Shown: positions 9,889 to 21,837 of the stretch, one piece after another
Layout of the letters: the number at the start of each line of letters is the position of its first letter
Numbering within the stretch: position 1 is the stretch's first letter
NCBI GenBank assembly: GCA_907165135.1
Contig: OU015566.1
Location: 558,001 to 622,000, forward strand
Direction: 5' to 3'
DNA from: Oikopleura dioica
Lineage: Eukaryota > Animalia > Chordata
DNA: 64,000 bases
Position numbers and translations under genes: made by a program
The notes under the pieces: generated by a model
Databases searched by the model: none
Seen by the model: only the letters and a program-made list of their open reading frames with translations
Told to the model about the DNA's origin: nothing

Positions 9889-12800
9889 TCACAGTGATAT
9901 GGTTTCATTGCAGCGGTAATTCAAATTGCTCCAAATCACATTTTCTTGGCTAAAATCAAGCACGCCCAATCGCCCGCCTTGAAGAGTCTTGTCGATCACG
10001 TGACCGGAGTCGATGATTTTATTTTCTCCTTGGAAAATTTGCACTTGAATGAGCCCAACACTCGGGCGATGACGCAGCACCCAGCGATAAGCGGTGAAAT
10101 CAGTCCAGCCGATCTTGTTCTCATCTTCCCAGAGAACTTTCACTTGCCCGGGAGTGTCTGATCCGTGCCAGAGAGCATTACGAAGCAAAGGACCGGGACC
10201 AGTTGCGGAATCGATGAGCTTGATCTGAAGACCAGTTGGAGCCACAGAGCGAAAGGGAGAAGGCCACCAGTAGGTTTGCTCGACCTGTTTCCACATCACA
10301 CTGTAGAAACGGGAAGAGCTTTGGAAGCTGAAAACAAAGCCGACGAAATCATCATCGGTGTCAGTGTTGATGTAGACGGTGCCACTGTAGTCAACGCCTG
10401 TAAAAATTTACGATAAAAAATCTTTTATTTTTTTTTTATAAAATCATACCTTGAACATTATGATTTCCAATCGCTAAACCAGGATCAGCATTGACCGACT
10501 GTATCAACTCTCTTCCTTCATTCAGCACAATCCAGTACGGATCAAGTTGGCTGGAACCTTCTGGGTCGAGTAAGATAGTTTCGTAGCCGGTAAATGAAGG
10601 AGAAGAAATGAGCGCATCCATTGGACAAATATCAAATTCATCAGGAGTTCCGTCGCCGTCAGAATCTGGTCCGCAGCCGAGTTGTTCAGGATTGTAGACT
10701 CTCGGGCAGTCGTCGACGTCGTCAGGGATTCCATCATCATCATCGTCGTCGTCGCAGATGTCGCCTACGCCGTCGAGGTCGAAATCAGATTGGTCAGCAT
10801 TCGCCGCTTCCGGGCAGTTGTCTCTTTCATCTGGAATTCCATCGCCGTCTGTGTCGACAACGACGCAGGAGTCATCTTGAGAGGGATTGTAGATCGTCGG
10901 GCAATTGTCGCAGTCATCTCCAACTCCATCATCATCGTCATCAAGCTGGTTTGGATTCGGAAGTCGGGGGCAGTTGTCGATGACATTGGTGATTCCGTCG
11001 TTGTCGATGTCATCATCGCAGGCGTCGCCAATTCCGTCGCCGTCGCTGTCTTCTTGGCCGGAGTTTGGAATGGTCGGACAGTTGTCTGCGCGACAGGTTG
11101 TGTCTCGGCAATTCAAGACTAAAATATAGAATGAGCGTTTGAAGAATTTTTCAATTTCTTACCTTCATCAGGGAATCCATCCAAATCAGAGTCTTTTCCA
11201 CAATTTTCTTTGCCATTTCCAGCGAAGCCAGTTGCGCAGACACAGTTGTGCGACCACGTGTCCTCGGCGAACTCGCAAATTGCATTCTTCGCACATCCAT
11301 TACAGTAACTAAAGCAGCCCACTGTCTGATTTCCAGTAAAACCGAGCATGCATTCGCCACATTTAAAACCGCCAGCGTAATTGAGACACTCCGAGTTTTC
11401 TACGCATCTGCCTTTTTTATGGTCTTTTTGAGAAATAAAAGAAGTAAAAGCTCTAGAATTTGGACCATTCCTTGTTCGCATTCGTCAACGTCGAAGCAGT
11501 CGATTCCATCGCCTTCGAATCCTTCAGGACATTCATCACAAGTTCCATTTGTGCAGCCGCTCCAGCAGATATCACATTGATCCTAGACTCATTCCAATTT
11601 TATCTTTCTTCCATTTTTACCTCTAAGTACTCGTATTCGTATGACTCATCCTCATCGTAGTAATAATCATCATAATCTACCTCATCTTCTGTACAATTGT
11701 GTCCATCGCCAAAGTAACCAGTCGGGCAGTTGCCACAAAAAGCTCCAGAAACCAGATCAGTACAGCTGACTCCCGGAAAGCATGGCAGAGAAATGGGTTA
11801 GAAAATTATCAAAAACATTTCTTTAAAAGTAAGACCCGTTTCTCATCGCTGCAGTAGATTCTAGAGTCGATGCAGTTCAGACCATCGCCTTGGAAATATT
11901 CAGGACAGAGAACGCATCGGGCCCCGCTTTTTCGGTTTCAGAAAATAGTTCTTTGAAATCAAGGAAGAAAATATTCGATTCAAAAACCGATCCTTTCGTC
12001 CTCCTCGCAAGCATCATGGCAAAATAACTCCGCACAGGTGGCCTTCATCATCTCTTTCTCTTCAATCTCTTGACACGTGACTCCATCACCAGTAAATCCT
12101 TCAGGACAAGGCGCGCACTTTCCACCATCAAGACTTTCAACACATTCGCCAAAACACTCCAATTGGGCGCAAGCGAGTCTAATTTTTCGTTATTTCAAAT
12201 TTCCAACATCTTATTCTGTACCCTGTTACGTAATGTGTGAATGACCCTTTGGGAGATATTTTCGTTATTTGAAATAAAATCCTGTTGCGAGTAACTGTGC
12301 AATTGAATCCGTCGCCTTCGAAGCCTTCTGGGCAGGGATCGCACTCGCCACCGGTCTCCGTATCGTTGCAGCTTGAGAAACAGTCTTTGTCTCGGTCAAT
12401 TAAGGAAATAAAAATGAATTGTTATTGTTCATTCCCTCCGTAAAAAAAAATAAAATAGAGCACTCTTGTATTTTCATCTTTTTGACCAATTCCTAAATCT
12501 TCGCAAAAGACCCTGGTATCCTCACAATCGACCCCATCGCCAACGAAAAACTCCGGGCACTGATCGCAAACACCCCCACTGGGCGTTTCTTCACAATCCC
12601 CAAAGCAGTCCATTTCCTCGCAATGAATTCGCTCATCTTCGCAAATCGTTCCATTCCCAGCGAAAAATTGAGGGCACGGCTCACAAACGCCTCCAGCAGG
12701 AGTTTCCGAGCAATCGCCAAAACAAGTCAAATCAGGGCAATGAGTTCGGATATCTGTACAAATTGTTCCATCGCCAATGTAATAATCAGGACAGGGAGCG

Positions 12801-15800
12801 CATTTGCCGCCATATTCACTATCAACGCAGTCAGAAAAACAGCTCATTTCCGAACAAAAAACTCTCGAATCCAAGCAGTCGAAACCATCCCCAACGAAGA
12901 ATTTTGGACAAGGCGCGCAAGAAAGACCATCTTCGGTTTCAACACAAGTCGAGTTGAAACAGCCCAAATCTTCGCATTCTGGCTCTTCAAGGTGAACGGC
13001 GCAGTAGGTTCCATTTCCATCCATTCCTTCAGGACAAGGATCACATTCGCCGCCGAATTCGCTTTCTGTACAAGTCGAGTAGCATTCGAGCTGATCGCAG
13101 TGAACTCTAGAATGAGGGTCTCTATTAAAAAATGGCTGATTCTAGAAAAAAATTGTAAAGGAATAAAATTTTCACAAAAAAAATGCAAAATATGTTGAAA
13201 ATCTTGGAGACCCAAACTGTAATCGATGCAATAAGTTCCATTGCCTTCAAAATAAACAGGACAAGGATCGCAAACGCCGCCATGTTCCATTTCCGTGCAG
13301 CCGCCAAAGCAAATCAATTCATCGCAATGAGTTCTACTATCTTCACACGTCGTTCCGTTTCCGCTGAAGTATTTGGGGCACGGATCGCATTGGCCGCCAG
13401 TTATGAAATCGGTGCAAGTGTCGTAGCAGTCCATTTCGGCGCAGAAAACCCGCGTATCTGTGCAATTGATCCCGTCGCCTTGGAAGAATCGAGGGCATTT
13501 TCCGCAGCGAGGGCCGCGCGGAGTATCGCGACATACTACTGAGTCGAAACAGGTGGAATCGGTGCATTTTATCGTTGTGCAGTCAAATCCATCGCCTTAC
13601 ATTTGAATTTATTAAAACCAAAATTTTTAAATAAAAATGATGTTTTTGATAAAATTAAAAAAATATTGTGAAAAGGAGATTTACCTTCAAAACCATCAGG
13701 ACATGAGCCACACTCGATCGCTCCATCAGGTCCGAGATCCGTGCACTTGACTCCCGGCCAGCACGGATTCGGCTCGCAACCAATTCGACTACAGTCAATC
13801 CCATCGCCAGTGAAACCTTCAGGACAATCTCCGCACATGTAGCCAGATTTGACTTCAAGAAGTTTCAAGTCATAACCCGCATATTCTTCGTATTGCCCGA
13901 AGTCTTCGAAAATCCTCATTGCACGAGTAAGATTGGCTGAAATATCGAAGCATTCGACATCTGGAAAACAGGGTCTATCCTCGCACGTGATAAATCGGCA
14001 ATTGACTCCATCTCCAGTCATGAATTCCGGACAATCTCCACAAACTACTTCTCCTTCCTTTCCATAAAGACAGTCCACTCCTGGATAGCAAGGATCATCG
14101 TCGCAGAGAATCATTTCACAGCTCCTTCCATCTCCTTTGTACCCTTCTGGGCAAGGTCCACAATTGATTTTTTTCTCATCAATTTGTGAGCATTCAACCA
14201 AGTGGTGGCAAAGTCCCATTTCACAAGTCTCAATTATTTCTTGGCAGTCTTGGCCGTTCCCAACGAACCCTTTTGGGCAATCTCCGCATCGAACGCCAAG
14301 CGGATCGTTTTCCAAACACTCCACTCCGGCAAAACATCGTAAATCCTCGCAAGTAACCGGGCGGCAGTCGAGTCCATCACCAATCATTTCTACAGGGCAC
14401 ACTCCGCAAGTTACAGTGCTTCCTTCTTCTGAGCATTTCACGCCAGGGTAGCATGGATTTTCAGCGCAGACTAGGGGCTCGCAGACTTTTCCATCCCCTT
14501 TGAACGCTTTTGGACAGTCGCCACAGGAGTACCCATCTCTAGAATCGTGACAAACTACGCCTGGAAAGCACGGCTGATCAGAGCAAGTGATGGGCAGGCA
14601 GGTCTTTCCGTCTCCTTTCATATTTATCGGACAATCGCCGCAGACTGGCCCCTTTTTCGAATTTTCGCACGTGACTCCCTGATAACAGGTCTTTTTCGAG
14701 CACAGTTCTTCTTCCATTTCGTCGGTGTAGTCTTCCAACACAACCGTTCTCATCTCGCTAAATCGCTCTCGATTTCTAGAAGCTCTGCTTGAAATAAATT
14801 CTGGGTCCTTTTCGCAACGAGTTCCATCTTCGTCATCGATGCAGATTTCGCTCTTTTTGCACGGATTTTCTTCTTCGCAAGTATCCGGAGTGCACCTGCC
14901 TCCTTTGTTCTTCTTTCCGAATCTACATGGAACAACGATGTCTTCTTCGATCATTATTTCGTCGCATTTTTCGCCGCAACCGTAATCGTCCGAGGCGTAT
15001 TCTTCCTTGATACACGTGATTCCATTTCCAACGTATCCATAAGGACAGGCGCCGCACTCGAACCCAGGATCGCGATAGGAGTTGATGCAGGAACTTCCTT
15101 GAAAACAAGGCGATGTTGAGCAACTGGTGTGGTGGACAGTTATTTGGCTCTGTTGCAGCGTTGCCATTGGCCCGTTGAAATTCTGCTGGGTCTGATCGAA
15201 GTTTTGGTTATTGTAGCCATATTGGATATTTGGCGGATTGGTGGGCGTCTGCGCGGGGAAATTCTGCGGCGGAATTGGATTATTCCAAGTCATTTGAGCA
15301 GGAGGGTTTCGGCCAGCAGGGGCGAGGCGCAAATTCCTTGGATTTTGAAAAACTCCTGGCTTGATTTCTGGCTGCTGGAGGCTGGTGCTGCTCGCGCCTA
15401 TGACAGGAGACTGGTAGTTTCCCGTGGGAAAGAGATTGTGAGACGTTGGAGGCCGGAGTTTGGACTCAGGAAAGTCGACGAAATCGGGCTCTTCGAAAGC
15501 TTTTTCTTGCCCGCCGTTTCCTTCTCTCGTGAAAGGAGGTGGAGTTATTGCGCGCTGAGTTGGTTCAACTGGTGGATCTGGGAGAAATTCAGAACCGTAG
15601 GTTTCAGGTTCAGTTTCGTACTCGTACTCTTCGTAATCGTACTCATCTTCATCGTAGTACTCGTACTCGGGCGTTGTCGTGGTCGTTGTTGATTTTGTTG
15701 TTGGAGGGCGAGTGGTTGTTTTTCGACGTCGTTTTTGTTTACGAGTTGTTGGATTCGGGACGGTTGTTGGGATCTGGGTCGTTGTTCTTGTGGTCGTGGT

Positions 15801-17434
15801 TGATGTTGTTTGAGCCGGTGGTGCATCAAGATGGTCGATGTTCGGAACGGTGAAGTTGAAGTTTTCAACTCCTGTTTCAGGATTCGACAGGTCGCAGTTC
15901 CATTTTGAATCTGGCCTACAAGTGCATCTCAAAACCGATCCATCGTCAGCAGTAACAACAGAACTCTCTCCTGGTCGATAATTGAACGATTCTTTTGAAC
16001 AAAGCGAGTAGCAGTTCACTTCTCCGCGATCATCGCATCTGCACTGCTGATTATTCCCGACATTTACGGTATCTTGGTGCCGGACGATTTTTCCCTTGAT
16101 GATGCAGCCAGCGTTCTTCTTCATTTTACAGTCGACGCTTGTTTGGCCATTCGAGTCTAGTAGACAGATACAGTCTTTTTTGTTGGCAGTCCATGTTTCG
16201 CCAACTTCTTTGATTTTTTCGGATTTTCGGTCGATGCAAAATGGTCGCCGCTCTTTTGACTTGTTTCTGATGAAGCACTCGGTCCGGAGCTTTCCGTTGA
16301 GATTTTTGCACGCGCATTGGTAGTCCTTGTTTTCCCGCTAGAATAATTGTTAGAATGAATTTGAAAAAATACTTGTTTACCTTGGATTGCCAAGTTTCAC
16401 TGGGCAAAAACGGAACTCCCGGCATGGTACCATCATAACAAGTCCTAATCTTCCCCTTCGGCGATTGAAATCCCGCTTCGCTCGGTGTCCTCGCTCCTGC
16501 TGGGCGCTGATTATGACTATCACACCTCCAAGTCGCCTCATTTCGCACCAGAACGCACTGGCACTTGAGCATGTTTCCATTTCCCATGTTTCTGACAGCA
16601 ACTTGGCCGGGTTGATAAACGACTCCATTTTCGACGCAACCGGATGGCGGAGGCTGCTGGCAGGTCATCTGATTTGCTGCTGGGCAATTGCAGTTTGAAG
16701 TTCCGGGATTTTGGGGGAAATACGCGCCTTGGGGTGGTCGCTGAGCCATTTGGGGGTTTCCGCAAGGCGAATTCGAGAAGCCTCCGTTTGGAGAATAAGC
16801 AGGTTGAGGAGGGGCGTAATTCTGCTGACAAGGAATTTGTTGAGAGCAGCCGACGCAAGTGAAACATGTGTACATTCTGCCATTTGTTTGCCACTGTCGC
16901 TGGACTACTCGAGGGTCGAAGGCGGAAGGAACTTGCGGAGGTATCGGCTGTTGAAGATTTTGAGTCGGCTGATCGTTTTGGTAAGGAAATTGATTTTGGG
17001 TGGAAGGGAAATTTTGATATTGCGTGTTTTGCTGAGTGTATGCGGCGGAGTTCTTGTTTTGGATAGAATTTTGGATACGAAAATTGAGTCAAAAGAGACC
17101 TGAAATGGAAAAATTAATCAGCTGAATAAAATTTTTATCGAAAAATTCCAATACTTTTTTATCTTTCATGATTTAAGTCTATCCGTGCCTTATTTTTTTT
17201 CTTGTTCGATCCGCCCATATTCAGAGAAAAATCAACCTGATGCGCCATCGTCGGAAAAACCGATCTTTCCCTCTTTTGCTTGGCCAATTTTCTCTCCAGC
17301 TTTATCGCTTTTCTTATCGCTCGGTCGTATCTTATCGTGAGTTTTTGCTGAAGTCTCATATTTTTTTCGTGTAGTTCTTTATTCGTCAATTTCGAATTCG
17401 CCAGCGACAGTATTAAAAACTGCCTCAAAATCAT
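9889..17434 (-). CDS. THBS: Large thrombospondin (COMP/TSP-type C-terminus): signal peptide, basic and Q/P-rich region, 5 Fn1-like modules, T/P-rich stalk, more than 20 EGF-like repeats, type-3 repeats, L-lectin-like C-terminal domain
   Basis: C-terminal domain aligns by eye to COMP (WKQVEQTYW, LRNALWH, GGRLGV.FSQENVIWSNL.YRCN), with DxDxDGxxDxCDNCP type-3 repeats and CGxCPxGxxGDGxxC EGF repeats. Signal peptide MILRQFLILSLANS at 17434; its junction to the 17.1-kb exon is unresolved. Confidence 0.93.
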
Positions 17435-17954: not shown

Positions 17955-20900
17955 ATGAAACTTTCGCCGGCGATTTTCGCAGCGCTCGAAGTCGCAAGTG
18001 CTCAGCGGGATCCTTGGAGGCTTCCAACGTAAGAGATTACATAAGAGATGTATTTCTAGAGCTAAATTTTCGGCTGACTGTTAGGAAAATATTAAATTTT
18101 AGAAAAAAATCTTTTGGTTTTTTTGCCTAAAAATCTCTAGAACCCTTGACCCGCTGCACTACAACATCCGAATCAAAGCCTACCTCGACCCAGAAGACCA
18201 AGGAGAAGACAATGACACGATCAACTTTCCAGCCAATACCCAGCAGCATTTCGACGCTTCTGCCAGGATCAAGATGAACTGCACCGAGCCAACTAGCGAA
18301 ATTATTCTCAATAGCTTGTATCTCGATTTTGACGCGGGTCAAACTTCGCTCAAACGAGGAAATGCTGACGTCAAAATTAATTCCGTCGTTTTTGATAATG
18401 ATCTCGAGCAAGTGACGATTTCGCTTGATGAGGAAATCAAGGAAGAGTACCAGAATCAGAATAATTTCAAAAAATTAAAAATTAAAAAAAAACTATAATT
18501 TCCACTAAATTCTATTTTGAGCTCTAAAAGATCAACGAAGAAATCGACCTATCAATCGATTACCGAGGATATCTCCAGCCCAACAACTTCGGTTTCTACA
18601 TCAGCTACTACGAAAACGAAGGAGTCCGCAACTACGTCGCTTCTTCTCAAATGCAAGGCCCATACGCTCGTCGAGTTTTTCCCGGCTTCGACGAGCCCGG
18701 TTTCAAAGCTGAATACTCAGTAACGATGGAATACCAGCAGAAAATGCCCTGGTCGAATCTGGACTACTATCCTCTTTCGAATATGCCATACAAAGGGCAG
18801 GCAGCGTGCAACGGAAATTGGTGTACTCAGGAGTTCGAGAAAACAGTGAAAATGTCAAGTTATCTGACTGCGTTTGCGATTGTTGACTTTGGCTCGGTGA
18901 ATACGGAAACCTCTGTCGAAAAGACTCCAGGCGCCGGGTGAAATTTCACAATGTTTGACCTTTTTTGGCTATAAAAAGCAATCTTCCTACAAAAAATTTT
19001 GACATGATCTTTTGACAACGTCATTTTGAATTTTACCCAAAAATAGCAAATCTATATGCTCGCCAACAGCTTATCGGCGAAAAAGACCAGCTGATGTCCG
19101 CCACTGGAACTGACAACCCAATGTGGTTCCCAGCAATTTCCACCGAACGCGTTACTGACCAATTCGGCAGCGTCCTCCGAAGCTACAAAGACATGGGCGT
19201 CGAAAAAGCTGATCAAATCGCCCTGCCCGATTTCAACGCCGGCGCCATGGAAAACTGGGGATTGGTGACTTACAGAGAGCAAAGCTTGCTCTACGACATG
19301 AATCGAGATCGATTCGACAGAAAGTTCTACGTCGCGAATGTTGTTAGCCACGAGATGGCGCACATGTGGTTTGGCGATTTTGTCACTTGCCAGTTTTGGG
19401 ACGAGCTCTGGCTGAATGAGGCTTTTGCTACTTTCATTTCTTATGTCGGGCTTGAGGAGAATAGGGATTCAAACAACTCAGTGAGGGAGAGCCTGAAATG
19501 GAATGATGATTCTAGCGTGGGAACATGGGATTTGAGGTGATTTTGAATATCTGGGTGAAAATAAAGGACGAGTTTTTTCTTCGTTATTTTCGTTTTTAGG
19601 GTCTTCGAAAAAAACTGCATATAAAAATTTTCCCCTTCATTATGGTTTTTTCAGCCGAAGTTTTATCGCAAATCGCTATCCAGCTGCCCTCCAGCACGAT
19701 CAAACCACTTCTTCGAACCCAATCGTCAACATCGAAAACAACAACGGCAAGGTCGAAGGTCATCCCCAAGCCGGTTCCTCCAACATCATTTATTCCAAAG
19801 GAGGAATTATTCTGAAGAACATTCGCTGCTTCCTCGGCGATGAAGTTTTCTTCGGCGGCCTTCAGGATTATCTCGAAAAGTTCAAATACAGCAATCCTGA
19901 TTCTTACGATTTGACTCAGGCCTGGGAAGACAAGCGAAAATCTGTCGGAAAAGACACCGAGTCGGAAAAGTATGACGAGTCGATTTGCGATGGAATCGGA
20001 TTCAATCAGAAATCAGGCGTTTTGATGAGCGGCAAAACGGTCGGAGAGCATTGGGATCCTTGGCTGCGGCAAATGGGCTACCCGTTCCTGACCGTGAGCT
20101 ATTCTGATGACTCATCAAAAGCAGGAATCAACGTCGAGCAAAAGCGATTCCTCAACAACCCTGACGATGACGCTTCCAATCCGCCATCGAAGCTTAACTA
20201 CAAATGGCCGATTCCTCTCCAAACTGCGTTCAAAACGAACGGAGCGATAAAATACATGGCTACTTGGATCGAAAACGGCTCGATCGACTTTGCTGAAACC
20301 AGCGACATCGATTTTGCGATCGTCAACGCCGACTACGTCTCGTTTTTTAGAACAAAATATGATGGGCAAATCCTCGAAGATCTGCTCAATGTTCTCTCCG
20401 TTGATCATACCGAGGTCCCATCTTTCTCCCGCGCTAATTTTGTCGCTGACTATTTCGCCTTCGCCGAGAATAAGCCACTCACCGGAGTTGACATTACTGA
20501 CACTTTTGAGTACACAAGCTTCATGGCAGAAGAAACTGACTTTGTAGTCTGGAAGATGTTTGATCGAGCAATGTCGAGTGTCAGAGGCATTTTGAAATAT
20601 ACTGATAGCAAGGAAGAGTTTCCTCGATTGAATTTGAAAATTTGAAAAAATGATCAATTTGGTAAGAAAGAGGTTAAAACTCAAACAAGGACGTTCTGGA
20701 TGGCTACCTTAGCTCATTGGTTCAAAAATACTACGACAACTTTGGCTACAGCGTTGACTTGTCGAAGATTGTTGACATGGATCGGGAGGCGATGAATTTG
20801 GCTCTGCTCATGTCCTGCCAATATGGGTAGAATCTGCTTTTCTGATCAAAAAATATTTTTTCAGGAACGCTGATTGCTTGGCCAACTCAAAGTCGTTGAT

Positions 20901-21631
20901 TGAAAAATACGACGGAAGTCTTCAAAATGAGCCTGATCGAGATCAAAAGCTCACTGCTTATTGCTATGGAATCCAAGGTTAAATCTCTTCTCATCTTCTT
21001 ATTGTAACTGAATTTCTAGAATCCGGCCAGGGAGAATGGGACAAGCTCTGGGCAAGCTACGCAACCGAGCAGAATGCGAATGAGCTGTACTCAATTCGAT
21101 ACGGTCTTGCCTGCTCCAAGGACCCCGCTACGATCAAAAACTGGCTGCAGCTTATCAAAGGCGATGATATCCGAACTCAAGACAAGCATACTGCCATCAA
21201 TCAAGTTTCAGGAACAGAAGTCGGAAGAGACCTCGTCTGGGAGTTTATTGAAGAAGAATGGCAATGGATCAAGGTAGGCTCTATCAACCTTCTTTTCTTA
21301 TCGCTTCTTTCAGGACAAAACTCTCCAAGAATCCTGGACTCGCGCTTCTTCCATCATTTCTACTTGCACGAGCACTTTTTCCACCGCCGAGCTGAAACAA
21401 AAAGTCGCTGCTTTTCGAAGCGCAAAATCAGCTGACATCAAACAAATGGGGCTTGAAGGCACATTCGATAATGTCATGACTACAATCGACAAGAACATCA
21501 AGTGGCGAGAAGAGAACGAGCAGAACATTGTCAACTGGATCAACGAGAATGGAAATGCTGGTGGAGATAGCGGAGATGCGGCTGCTATGGCTGCTTCTGT
21601 CTTTTTTGTTCTCGCTTCGATTTTGCTTTAG
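17955..21631 (+). CDS. ANPEP: M1 aminopeptidase N-like metallopeptidase with cleavable signal peptide and GPI-type C-terminus
   Basis: [24 protein letters not shown]|[10 protein letters not shown]; [11 protein letters not shown]; GAMENWGL; HEMAHMWFG-x-WLNEAFA (HExxH-18x-E); C-terminus [27 protein letters not shown]. Confidence 0.95.
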
Positions 21632-21837
21632 AGAAATAAAAATTGAGAAGCATATATTTTTATCCTCGTGATAATTTTAGCTCATCAGATTCTCCTTCAA
21701 ATTTCGCATGATTGTGTGTTCTTATTTTTGGGCAGATCAATTTATTTGCATTTCTATTTGTTTGGTCGCTGCGTTCTACAAATGTAGCTTTTTTACTCTT
21801 GCCGGCCAGAAGGAGAGAAAAAGTAAAGATAAAAATA

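Follow-up and report, generated by a model that had tools for sequence, protein, structure and literature searches.

Thrombospondins combine a fixed C-terminal part with N-terminal domains that vary (PMC3308698). The type B thrombospondins are without a von Willebrand factor type C (VWC) domain (PMC3308698), and the mega-, sushi- and poriferan-thrombospondins defined by Shoemark and colleagues carry no fibronectin type I (Fn1) modules (PMC6526912). Fn1 is regarded as chordate-specific (PMC3308698), and its known hosts are fibronectin, a few vertebrate proteases and a tunicate fibronectin-like protein (PMC3308698, PMC4422808), the last of which has been described with its Fn1 modules for both Ciona and Oikopleura dioica (PMC4422808). 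Here we analyzed a stretch of 64,000 nucleotides from the larvacean O. dioica (GenBank assembly GCA_907165135.1, contig OU015566.1, positions 558,001 to 622,000; referred to as the window, in whose positions all coordinates are given unless another contig is named), in which a gene with very small introns occupies the minus strand at about 9892-17434. This gene encodes a thrombospondin, and the five four-cysteine modules near the predicted N-terminus of its product are, in our judgment very probably, divergent Fn1-type modules that are part of that thrombospondin.

The search of the whole genome (64.3 Mb, 19 contigs) for TSP_C, the C-terminal domain of the family, found a single locus, which is this gene; no other thrombospondin was found in this larvacean genome. 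Among the solved chains of the PDB, COMP is closest to the C-terminal domain of the gene product (E 3.8e-70). The canonical row of EGF-like repeats followed by type 3 repeats and one TSP_C at the C-terminus is present and is colinear with an orthologous contig. In what follows, three related contigs serve for comparison: L024, a close relative whose modules are 87-90% identical to those of the window, and L023 and L026, which are more distant larvacean contigs. Intact M2 and the full five-module array were taken from the naturally uninterrupted open reading frames (ORFs) of these three contigs. The modules, each with the cysteine pattern C..CxC..C and 32-41 amino acids long, lie on the minus strand at 15894-16638:

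M1, 16522-16638, minus strand: putative Fn1-type module of 39 amino acids, Pfam fn1 score 17.0-17.4 bits.
M2, 16381-16440 and 16275-16337, minus strand: module in two halves, one in exon 2 and the other at the start of exon 3.
M2 in the relatives, L024:1250-1372, L023:5256-5381 and L026:1362-1487: uninterrupted, as found by sequence comparison.
Intron in M2, 16338-16380, minus strand: 43 nucleotides, GT..AG, phase 0, without counterpart in L024, L023 and L026.
M3, 16128-16238, minus strand: putative Fn1-type module of 37 amino acids, Pfam fn1 score 14 bits.
M4, 16011-16106, minus strand: 32 amino acids, the shortest and most divergent module.
M5, 15894-16001, minus strand: putative Fn1-type module of 36 amino acids, no Pfam match.

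An earlier note on this DNA, made by a model from the sequence alone, had proposed five Fn1-like modules at the N-terminus of a thrombospondin, read after removal of an intron at 16342-16381. The five modules and their translations were confirmed, while the intron had to be moved to 16338-16380. M2 is uninterrupted in L024, L023 and L026 with identical residues at the junction, which confirms the splice, and the M2 of L024 reads exactly as the spliced M2 of the earlier note. Because the 43-nucleotide intron is absent from the close relative as well as from L023 and L026, comparison of these contigs points to a lineage-specific intron gain or loss. Across six frames of the window, the expression C-x(17-30)-CxC-x(5-13)-C occurs five times and all five occurrences are in this gene, compared with a mean of 0.43 and a maximum of 2 in 30 shuffles. 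M1, M3, M4 and M5 account for four of these matches; M2, which is split by its intron, is not detectable in this way. The fifth match is a Pro/Gln-rich stretch at 16660-16764 (minus strand), which was considered as a sixth module on account of its C..CxC..C spacing and rejected, as the module profile gives it only about 0-3 bits.

The four cysteines are invariant in all 17 modules that were aligned from five sources (lengths 32-42 residues), and the 3-36 residues between one module and the next are free of cysteine. Fn1 is expected to have a Tyr, then Gly-Glu/Asp-x-Trp, and an aromatic residue two positions ahead of the last cysteine. In the same alignment, this Trp is present in M2 and M3 and missing in M1, M4 and M5; M1 and M5 have Tyr or Phe, and an aromatic residue precedes their last cysteine, while M4 is without most of the conserved aromatic and Gly positions. 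In three more distant orthologues (L023, L026 and L027), M5 ends in G-E-W-x-C, as several fibronectin modules do, and the orthologue profile aligns M5 to fibronectin module 11.

Evidence for the assignment to Fn1 comes from a profile search of 177,635 PDB sequences. The profile of the 17 aligned modules (profile A2) had only nine significant matches, all of them fibronectin Fn1 fragments (E 1e-14 to 3e-6), which include the single eleventh fibronectin module (30.8 bits) and the seventh module (27.3 bits). Its further rows were a tenth fibronectin chain at E 0.27 and two unrelated chains at E 2.5, and neither a VWC nor a pacifastin chain was found up to E 10. As a control for true Fn1, a profile of four Fn1 modules from the fibronectin-like gene in the same genome was searched and found the same fibronectin set. 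In contrast, a control profile of eight VWC N-terminal halves, also from the same genome, found VWF, NELL2, mucins, collagen IIA, chordin and pacifastins, with fibronectin only at E 0.22; the 49 sequences that this control found at E <= 1 were mostly domains of the VWC type (from VWF, NELL2, mucins and collagen IIA), with pacifastins in addition. On the evidence of these profiles, the test separates Fn1 from VWC cleanly and the thrombospondin modules appear on the Fn1 side, where they behave like the true-Fn1 control and unlike the VWC control. The Fn1 reading of the earlier note is borne out to this extent. A profile of M2 and M3 had marginal fibronectin matches only (E 0.03-0.18), and a single-sequence phmmer search of PDB sequences with the array found nothing. 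The word-based homologue search with the module region likewise found nothing at E <= 0.01 within its length limits, and the module profile found only the gene's own modules in its own genome, where the word-based first pass makes this weak evidence of absence.

The predicted fold is consistent with the profile search. The AlphaFold model of M3-M5, made from a single sequence (pLDDT 84), shows five strands in each module, predicted to form the two-stranded and three-stranded antiparallel sheets of Fn1, and the top Foldseek matches of this model are fibronectin Fn1 arrays (E 1e-6 to 1e-3). With VIA-align, the fibronectin 2F1-3F1 pair reached Z 5.9, the FnI of factor XII (FXII) Z 5.7 (rmsd 1.2-1.4 A over 38-39 residues) and the tPA finger Z 5.1, and the modeled M3 superimposes on FXII and fibronectin Fn1 with an rmsd of 1.2-1.6 A over 38-39 residues; pacifastin reached only Z 2.8. 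A five-module model based on the L024 array (pLDDT 70) gave the same ranking. The check by AlphaFold and Foldseek that the earlier note had suggested thus has Fn1 structures as its best or nearly best matches.

Several results weigh against an Fn1 assignment. No module reaches the curated Pfam cut-off for either fn1 (PF00039, 27 bits) or VWC (PF00093, 27.6 bits), the best fn1 score in the window being 17.4 bits, and it is because they lie below the fn1 cut-off that we call the modules divergent Fn1-type. Only five of the 17 aligned modules match fn1 at all (best E 3.7e-4) and one of the 17 matches VWC, while Pfam searches of the whole orthologues found no fn1 or VWC match at E <= 1. M4 scores for VWC and not for fn1 (18.6 bits, at profile positions 1-31 only) and matches a VWC repeat of a frog CCN/kielin-like protein at E 4e-8. 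In hhalign comparisons, the module profile ties between the Fn1 modules (93.8%, score 30.4) and the VWC halves (94.2%, score 30.1) of the same genome. The nearest named clusters in the ESM Atlas are VWC proteins, with scores of 0.75-0.80 that are often reached by chance, and in VIA-align the VWC of NELL2 (Z 5.4) and the C4 domain of VWF (Z 5.0) come close behind the best Fn1. A profile of M4 by itself found nothing relevant in the PDB, so that M4 is not assignable by itself; between Fn1 and a VWC half it is ambiguous and leans towards VWC. In the comparison of fn1, VWC and pacifastin by HMMER, which the earlier note had called for, the Pfam models with their curated cut-offs are not decisive and the PDB search by profile points to Fn1.

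These results bear on the strongest of the alternatives, that the modules are truncated VWC domains of which only the N-terminal subdomain is left, and which would have derived from the VWC of a type A thrombospondin in its original place, been duplicated and converged on the Fn1 cysteine pattern. The scores of M4 for the first 31 positions of VWC and for the CCN/kielin-like repeat, the hhalign tie, the albeit weak ESM Atlas neighbors and the similar Z scores of the NELL2 and VWF C domains all fit such an origin. So does the position of the array, as TSP-1 and TSP-2 have their VWC after the coiled coil, at a place similar to that of the modules here. The N-terminal subdomain of the VWC domains of type A thrombospondins, chordin, CCN and NELL also has the same fold as the modules, and the hhalign tie fits the long-standing view of Fn1 and the first VWC subdomain as having the same fold and probably a common origin. 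However, a full VWC domain has ten cysteines, including CxxCxC and CC motifs (CCxxC), and a second subdomain. None of the modules has a cysteine three residues before CxC, and the CC motif and the second subdomain are likewise absent. Moreover, the module profile recovers no VWC chain from the PDB up to E 10, while the control of VWC halves recovers VWC-type domains and essentially no fibronectin. Finally, the C-terminal domain is closest to COMP, which is of type B, and type B thrombospondins have no VWC (PMC3308698). On balance, we regard truncated VWC domains as improbable and prefer divergent Fn1-type modules. The same genome has a 5529-amino-acid open frame with many VWC matches at G000:C2:12011240-12023371, which is probably a giant VWC-rich secreted protein.

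The modules would have to be read differently if their exons were unconnected with the thrombospondin and formed a gene of their own, or a region that is untranslated or decaying, as the junction between exon 1 and exon 2, which has no canonical donor, might suggest. The linkage of the modules is, however, physical. The second half of M2 and M3-M5 stand with the first EGF-like repeats in one stop-free exon. In L023, a single ORF of 1573 amino acids contains the N-terminal helix, the cysteine cluster, M1-M5, the spacer and most of the EGF-like repeats, the type 3 repeats and TSP_C lie downstream of it on the same strand, and the whole contig is colinear with the window. Strong purifying selection, for which the values are given below, and the position of the next upstream gene on the other strand also speak against separation. 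We therefore consider a separate gene very unlikely; gene structure and colinearity both indicate that the modules belong to a real thrombospondin, as the earlier note had supposed. As for pacifastin-like protease-inhibitor units, which have a small disulfide-rich beta fold in common with the modules and were found by the fold search at Z 2.8, we give them practically no credence, because that value is far below those of Fn1, the modules have four cysteines and not the six of the pacifastin pattern, and the module profile matches no pacifastin although the VWC control does.

The Fn1-type array is conserved. When the module region was compared by HMMER with 1.84 billion representative proteins, no more than ten of them matched at E <= 0.001: six are orthologues from marine metagenome contigs, and the other four are one frog CCN/kielin-like VWC protein and three repeat proteins whose matches are weak and unrelated. 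The close relative differs from the window with a pN of 0.074-0.079 and a pS of 0.62-0.75, with synonymous sites near saturation; the modules are under strong purifying selection. All 20 module cysteines are conserved in the three related contigs with the whole array, the module cysteines are kept in every orthologue that holds them, and the module profile recognizes exactly five modules in each complete orthologue. The modules have been kept as a set of five in several larvacean lineages.

The remaining features of the gene, in the order in which they are transcribed, are as follows:

Exon 1, 17219-17434, minus strand: within an ORF at 17159-17434; signal-like hydrophobic start, followed by a putative basic amphipathic helix of about 45 residues.
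Intron 1, 17053-17218, minus strand: from the last conserved codon of exon 1 to the inferred acceptor of exon 2.
Exon 2, 16381-17052, minus strand: Pro/Gln-rich stretch, cysteine cluster, pseudo-module, M1 and the first half of M2; colinear with the L023 ORF.
Cysteine cluster, 16828-16866, minus strand: CxxCxxC and one more Cys after the Pro/Gln-rich stretch; conserved in L023, L024 and L026.
Exon 3, 13685-16337, minus strand: second half of M2, M3-M5, the spacer and roughly the first eight EGF-like repeats in one stop-free frame; donor at 13684.
Mucin-like spacer, 15672-15824, minus strand: rich in Thr and Pro, as read from the translation.
Acidic stretch, 15594-15671, minus strand: rich in Tyr, Glu and Asp, directly after the mucin-like spacer; similar stretches in the orthologues P0002 and P0003.
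EGF-like repeats of the thrombospondin type 2 kind, 13685-15122, minus strand: in the same exon 3 as the second half of M2 and M3-M5.
Further exons with EGF-like repeats, 11170-13594, minus strand: recognized by repeat motifs.
Thrombospondin type 3 calcium-binding repeats, 10436-11116, minus strand: Pfam TSP_3, 125.5 bits, in five stretches.
TSP_C, the C-terminal lectin-like domain, 9892-10404, minus strand: Pfam TSP_C, 192.7 bits, with the stop codon directly after it.

In the whole gene, at least 21 EGF-like repeats (21-22) of the form CxxCP....G[DN]G..C are spread over several small exons between 11170 and 15122. The acidic Tyr-rich stretch at 15594-15671 looks like a tyrosine-sulfation region. 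Upstream, an adjoining gene on the opposite strand (18270-21650, plus strand) has a zinc motif of the M1-aminopeptidase type (HExxH, then WFG).

Exon 1 extends as far as 17219 or further. Residues 29-85 of the L023 ORF, in which this segment is continuous with the rest, are colinear with exon 1 at 70% identity, and the start of exon 1 is conserved in L024 and L026. Reading of the sequence found no in-frame GT donor of exon 1 before the stop, which counts against the gene model at this point and is the reason why a non-canonical donor (e.g., GC) is likely at the junction of exon 1 with exon 2. The acceptor of exon 2 is placed, from the sequence, at 17053/17052; its frame is bounded upstream by a stop at 17089-17091. 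A classical-looking acceptor at 17101/17100 was ruled out, because the coding frame would then meet that stop.

The earlier note had seen neither a laminin-G-like domain nor an oligomerizing coiled coil in front of the modules. The first of these observations stands: there is no room for a laminin-G-like domain upstream, where the next gene lies on the other strand. The second had overlooked the exon upstream, with its conserved basic helix, and the CxxCxxC cluster. Exon 1 may encode a signal peptide and a short coiled coil. A conserved Gln/Arg/Trp motif stands in front of the cysteine cluster, which is almost the same in four larvacean sequences and may be a candidate for inter-chain disulfides. 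In other thrombospondins, oligomerization into trimers or pentamers depends on a helix with cysteines, an arrangement that the exon 1 helix and the CxxCxxC cluster resemble as a candidate only. The signal for a coiled coil in this helix is weak, both in its match to the Pfam coiled-coil models (E 0.004) and in its heptads, which have hydrophobic residues at 46% of the a/d positions. Because of this weak heptad signal, we leave the oligomerizing N-terminus as a candidate.

In its predicted order, the protein runs from a signal-like start and a short basic helix through the Pro/Gln-rich stretch with its cysteine cluster to five Fn1-type modules, the spacer, at least 21 EGF-like repeats, the type 3 repeats and TSP_C. 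The Fn1 modules of fibronectin and tPA recognize partners such as collagen, fibrin, fibronectin and bacterial adhesins by strand addition, in which an extended segment of the partner joins the sheet of the module as a further beta strand. By analogy with these Fn1 modules, we propose that the five-module array may serve as a multivalent binding arm of a matrix protein, which would be more multivalent still if the N-terminal helix and the cysteine cluster make the protein an oligomer; we put the chances that the array has a ligand-binding role at about even. Together with the glycosylated and acidic spacer, the long EGF-like rod and the calcium-binding C-terminal domain, such an arm could make the protein a matrix cross-linker. 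Od-thrombospondin 3 is reported to be notochord-specific in O. dioica (PMC3034685), and the gene is probably Od-thrombospondin 3, because only one TSP_C locus was found in the genome. If so, the arm may tie the thrombospondin into the matrix of the notochord sheath. A bolder version, which we consider unlikely, is that in larvaceans an arm of five Fn1 modules, similar to that of fibronectin, was transferred to the thrombospondin and, with an oligomerizing N-terminus, plays the part in the notochord sheath that the Fn1 arrays of fibronectin play in vertebrates, binding chains of collagen or of the fibrin(ogen)-like kind through strand addition and organizing fibrils. An Fn1 arm that does the job of fibronectin in this way would mean that Fn1 modules were shuffled between matrix genes, together with this function, before true fibronectin arose.

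The gene represents a new domain architecture within the known thrombospondin family. The earlier note had called it undescribed; in agreement, text searches of the literature, with incomplete coverage of the work on thrombospondin evolution, found no description of Fn1 modules in any thrombospondin. The N-terminus of thrombospondins is known to vary, but Fn1 is not named among its domains in the literature covered by the search. With Fn1-type modules, the gene would be a second, independent Fn1 host in an invertebrate chordate and offer a concrete starting point for tracing the course and timing of Fn1 shuffling and the relation of Fn1 to the N-terminal half of VWC. Larvacean gene sets would lack an annotation for these modules, because they fall below the cut-offs curated by Pfam. 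The finding is of modest practical value, as it concerns one lineage-specific architecture whose function is deduced by analogy.

Compared with the Fn1 modules of fibronectin and the fingers of tPA, factor XII and HGFA, the modules described here have in common the four cysteines in C..CxC..C order within about 40 residues, the arrangement in tandem arrays with short linkers and, in the predicted models, the five strands arranged as two plus three. The matches of the module profile to modules of human fibronectin are significant. The modules differ in that they score below the Pfam cut-off, M4 has only 32 residues and Trp is missing in M1, M4 and M5; moreover, their host is a thrombospondin and they are not accompanied by Fn2 or Fn3 modules. 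The only other place of known Fn1 modules in tunicates is the fibronectin-like protein. In this genome, its gene is at G000:C5:8516780-8521540 (L004, L008 and L010), with fn1 matches of 42 and 32 bits, and consists of three Fn1, two Fn2 and three more Fn1 modules followed by Ig-like and Fn3-like sequence, in agreement with the published description for O. dioica. Unlike the thrombospondin, it has Fn2, Ig and Fn3 modules, and it lies on another contig. Compared with the Fn1 modules of this gene, those of the thrombospondin reach 13-19 bits per domain and are therefore not a recent copy.

The mega-thrombospondins are likewise large proteins of the thrombospondin family with many EGF-like repeats (PMC6526912). 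What sets them apart is a region of leucine-rich repeats (about 1,000 residues), cadherin domains, a second ConA-like domain beyond TSP_C and the lack of a coiled coil (PMC6526912). A reading of the gene as a mega-thrombospondin was rejected, as its frame stops right after TSP_C and Pfam finds neither leucine-rich repeats nor cadherin domains in the N-terminal exons. With the type B thrombospondins (TSP-3, TSP-4 and TSP-5/COMP), the gene has in common COMP as its best PDB match, the absence of TSR repeats and VWC, and possibly an N-terminal helix with nearby cysteines. To this plan it adds five Fn1-type modules, a mucin-like spacer, an acidic Tyr-rich spacer and a row of at least 21 EGF-like repeats, compared with about four in type B thrombospondins and three or four in vertebrate thrombospondins.

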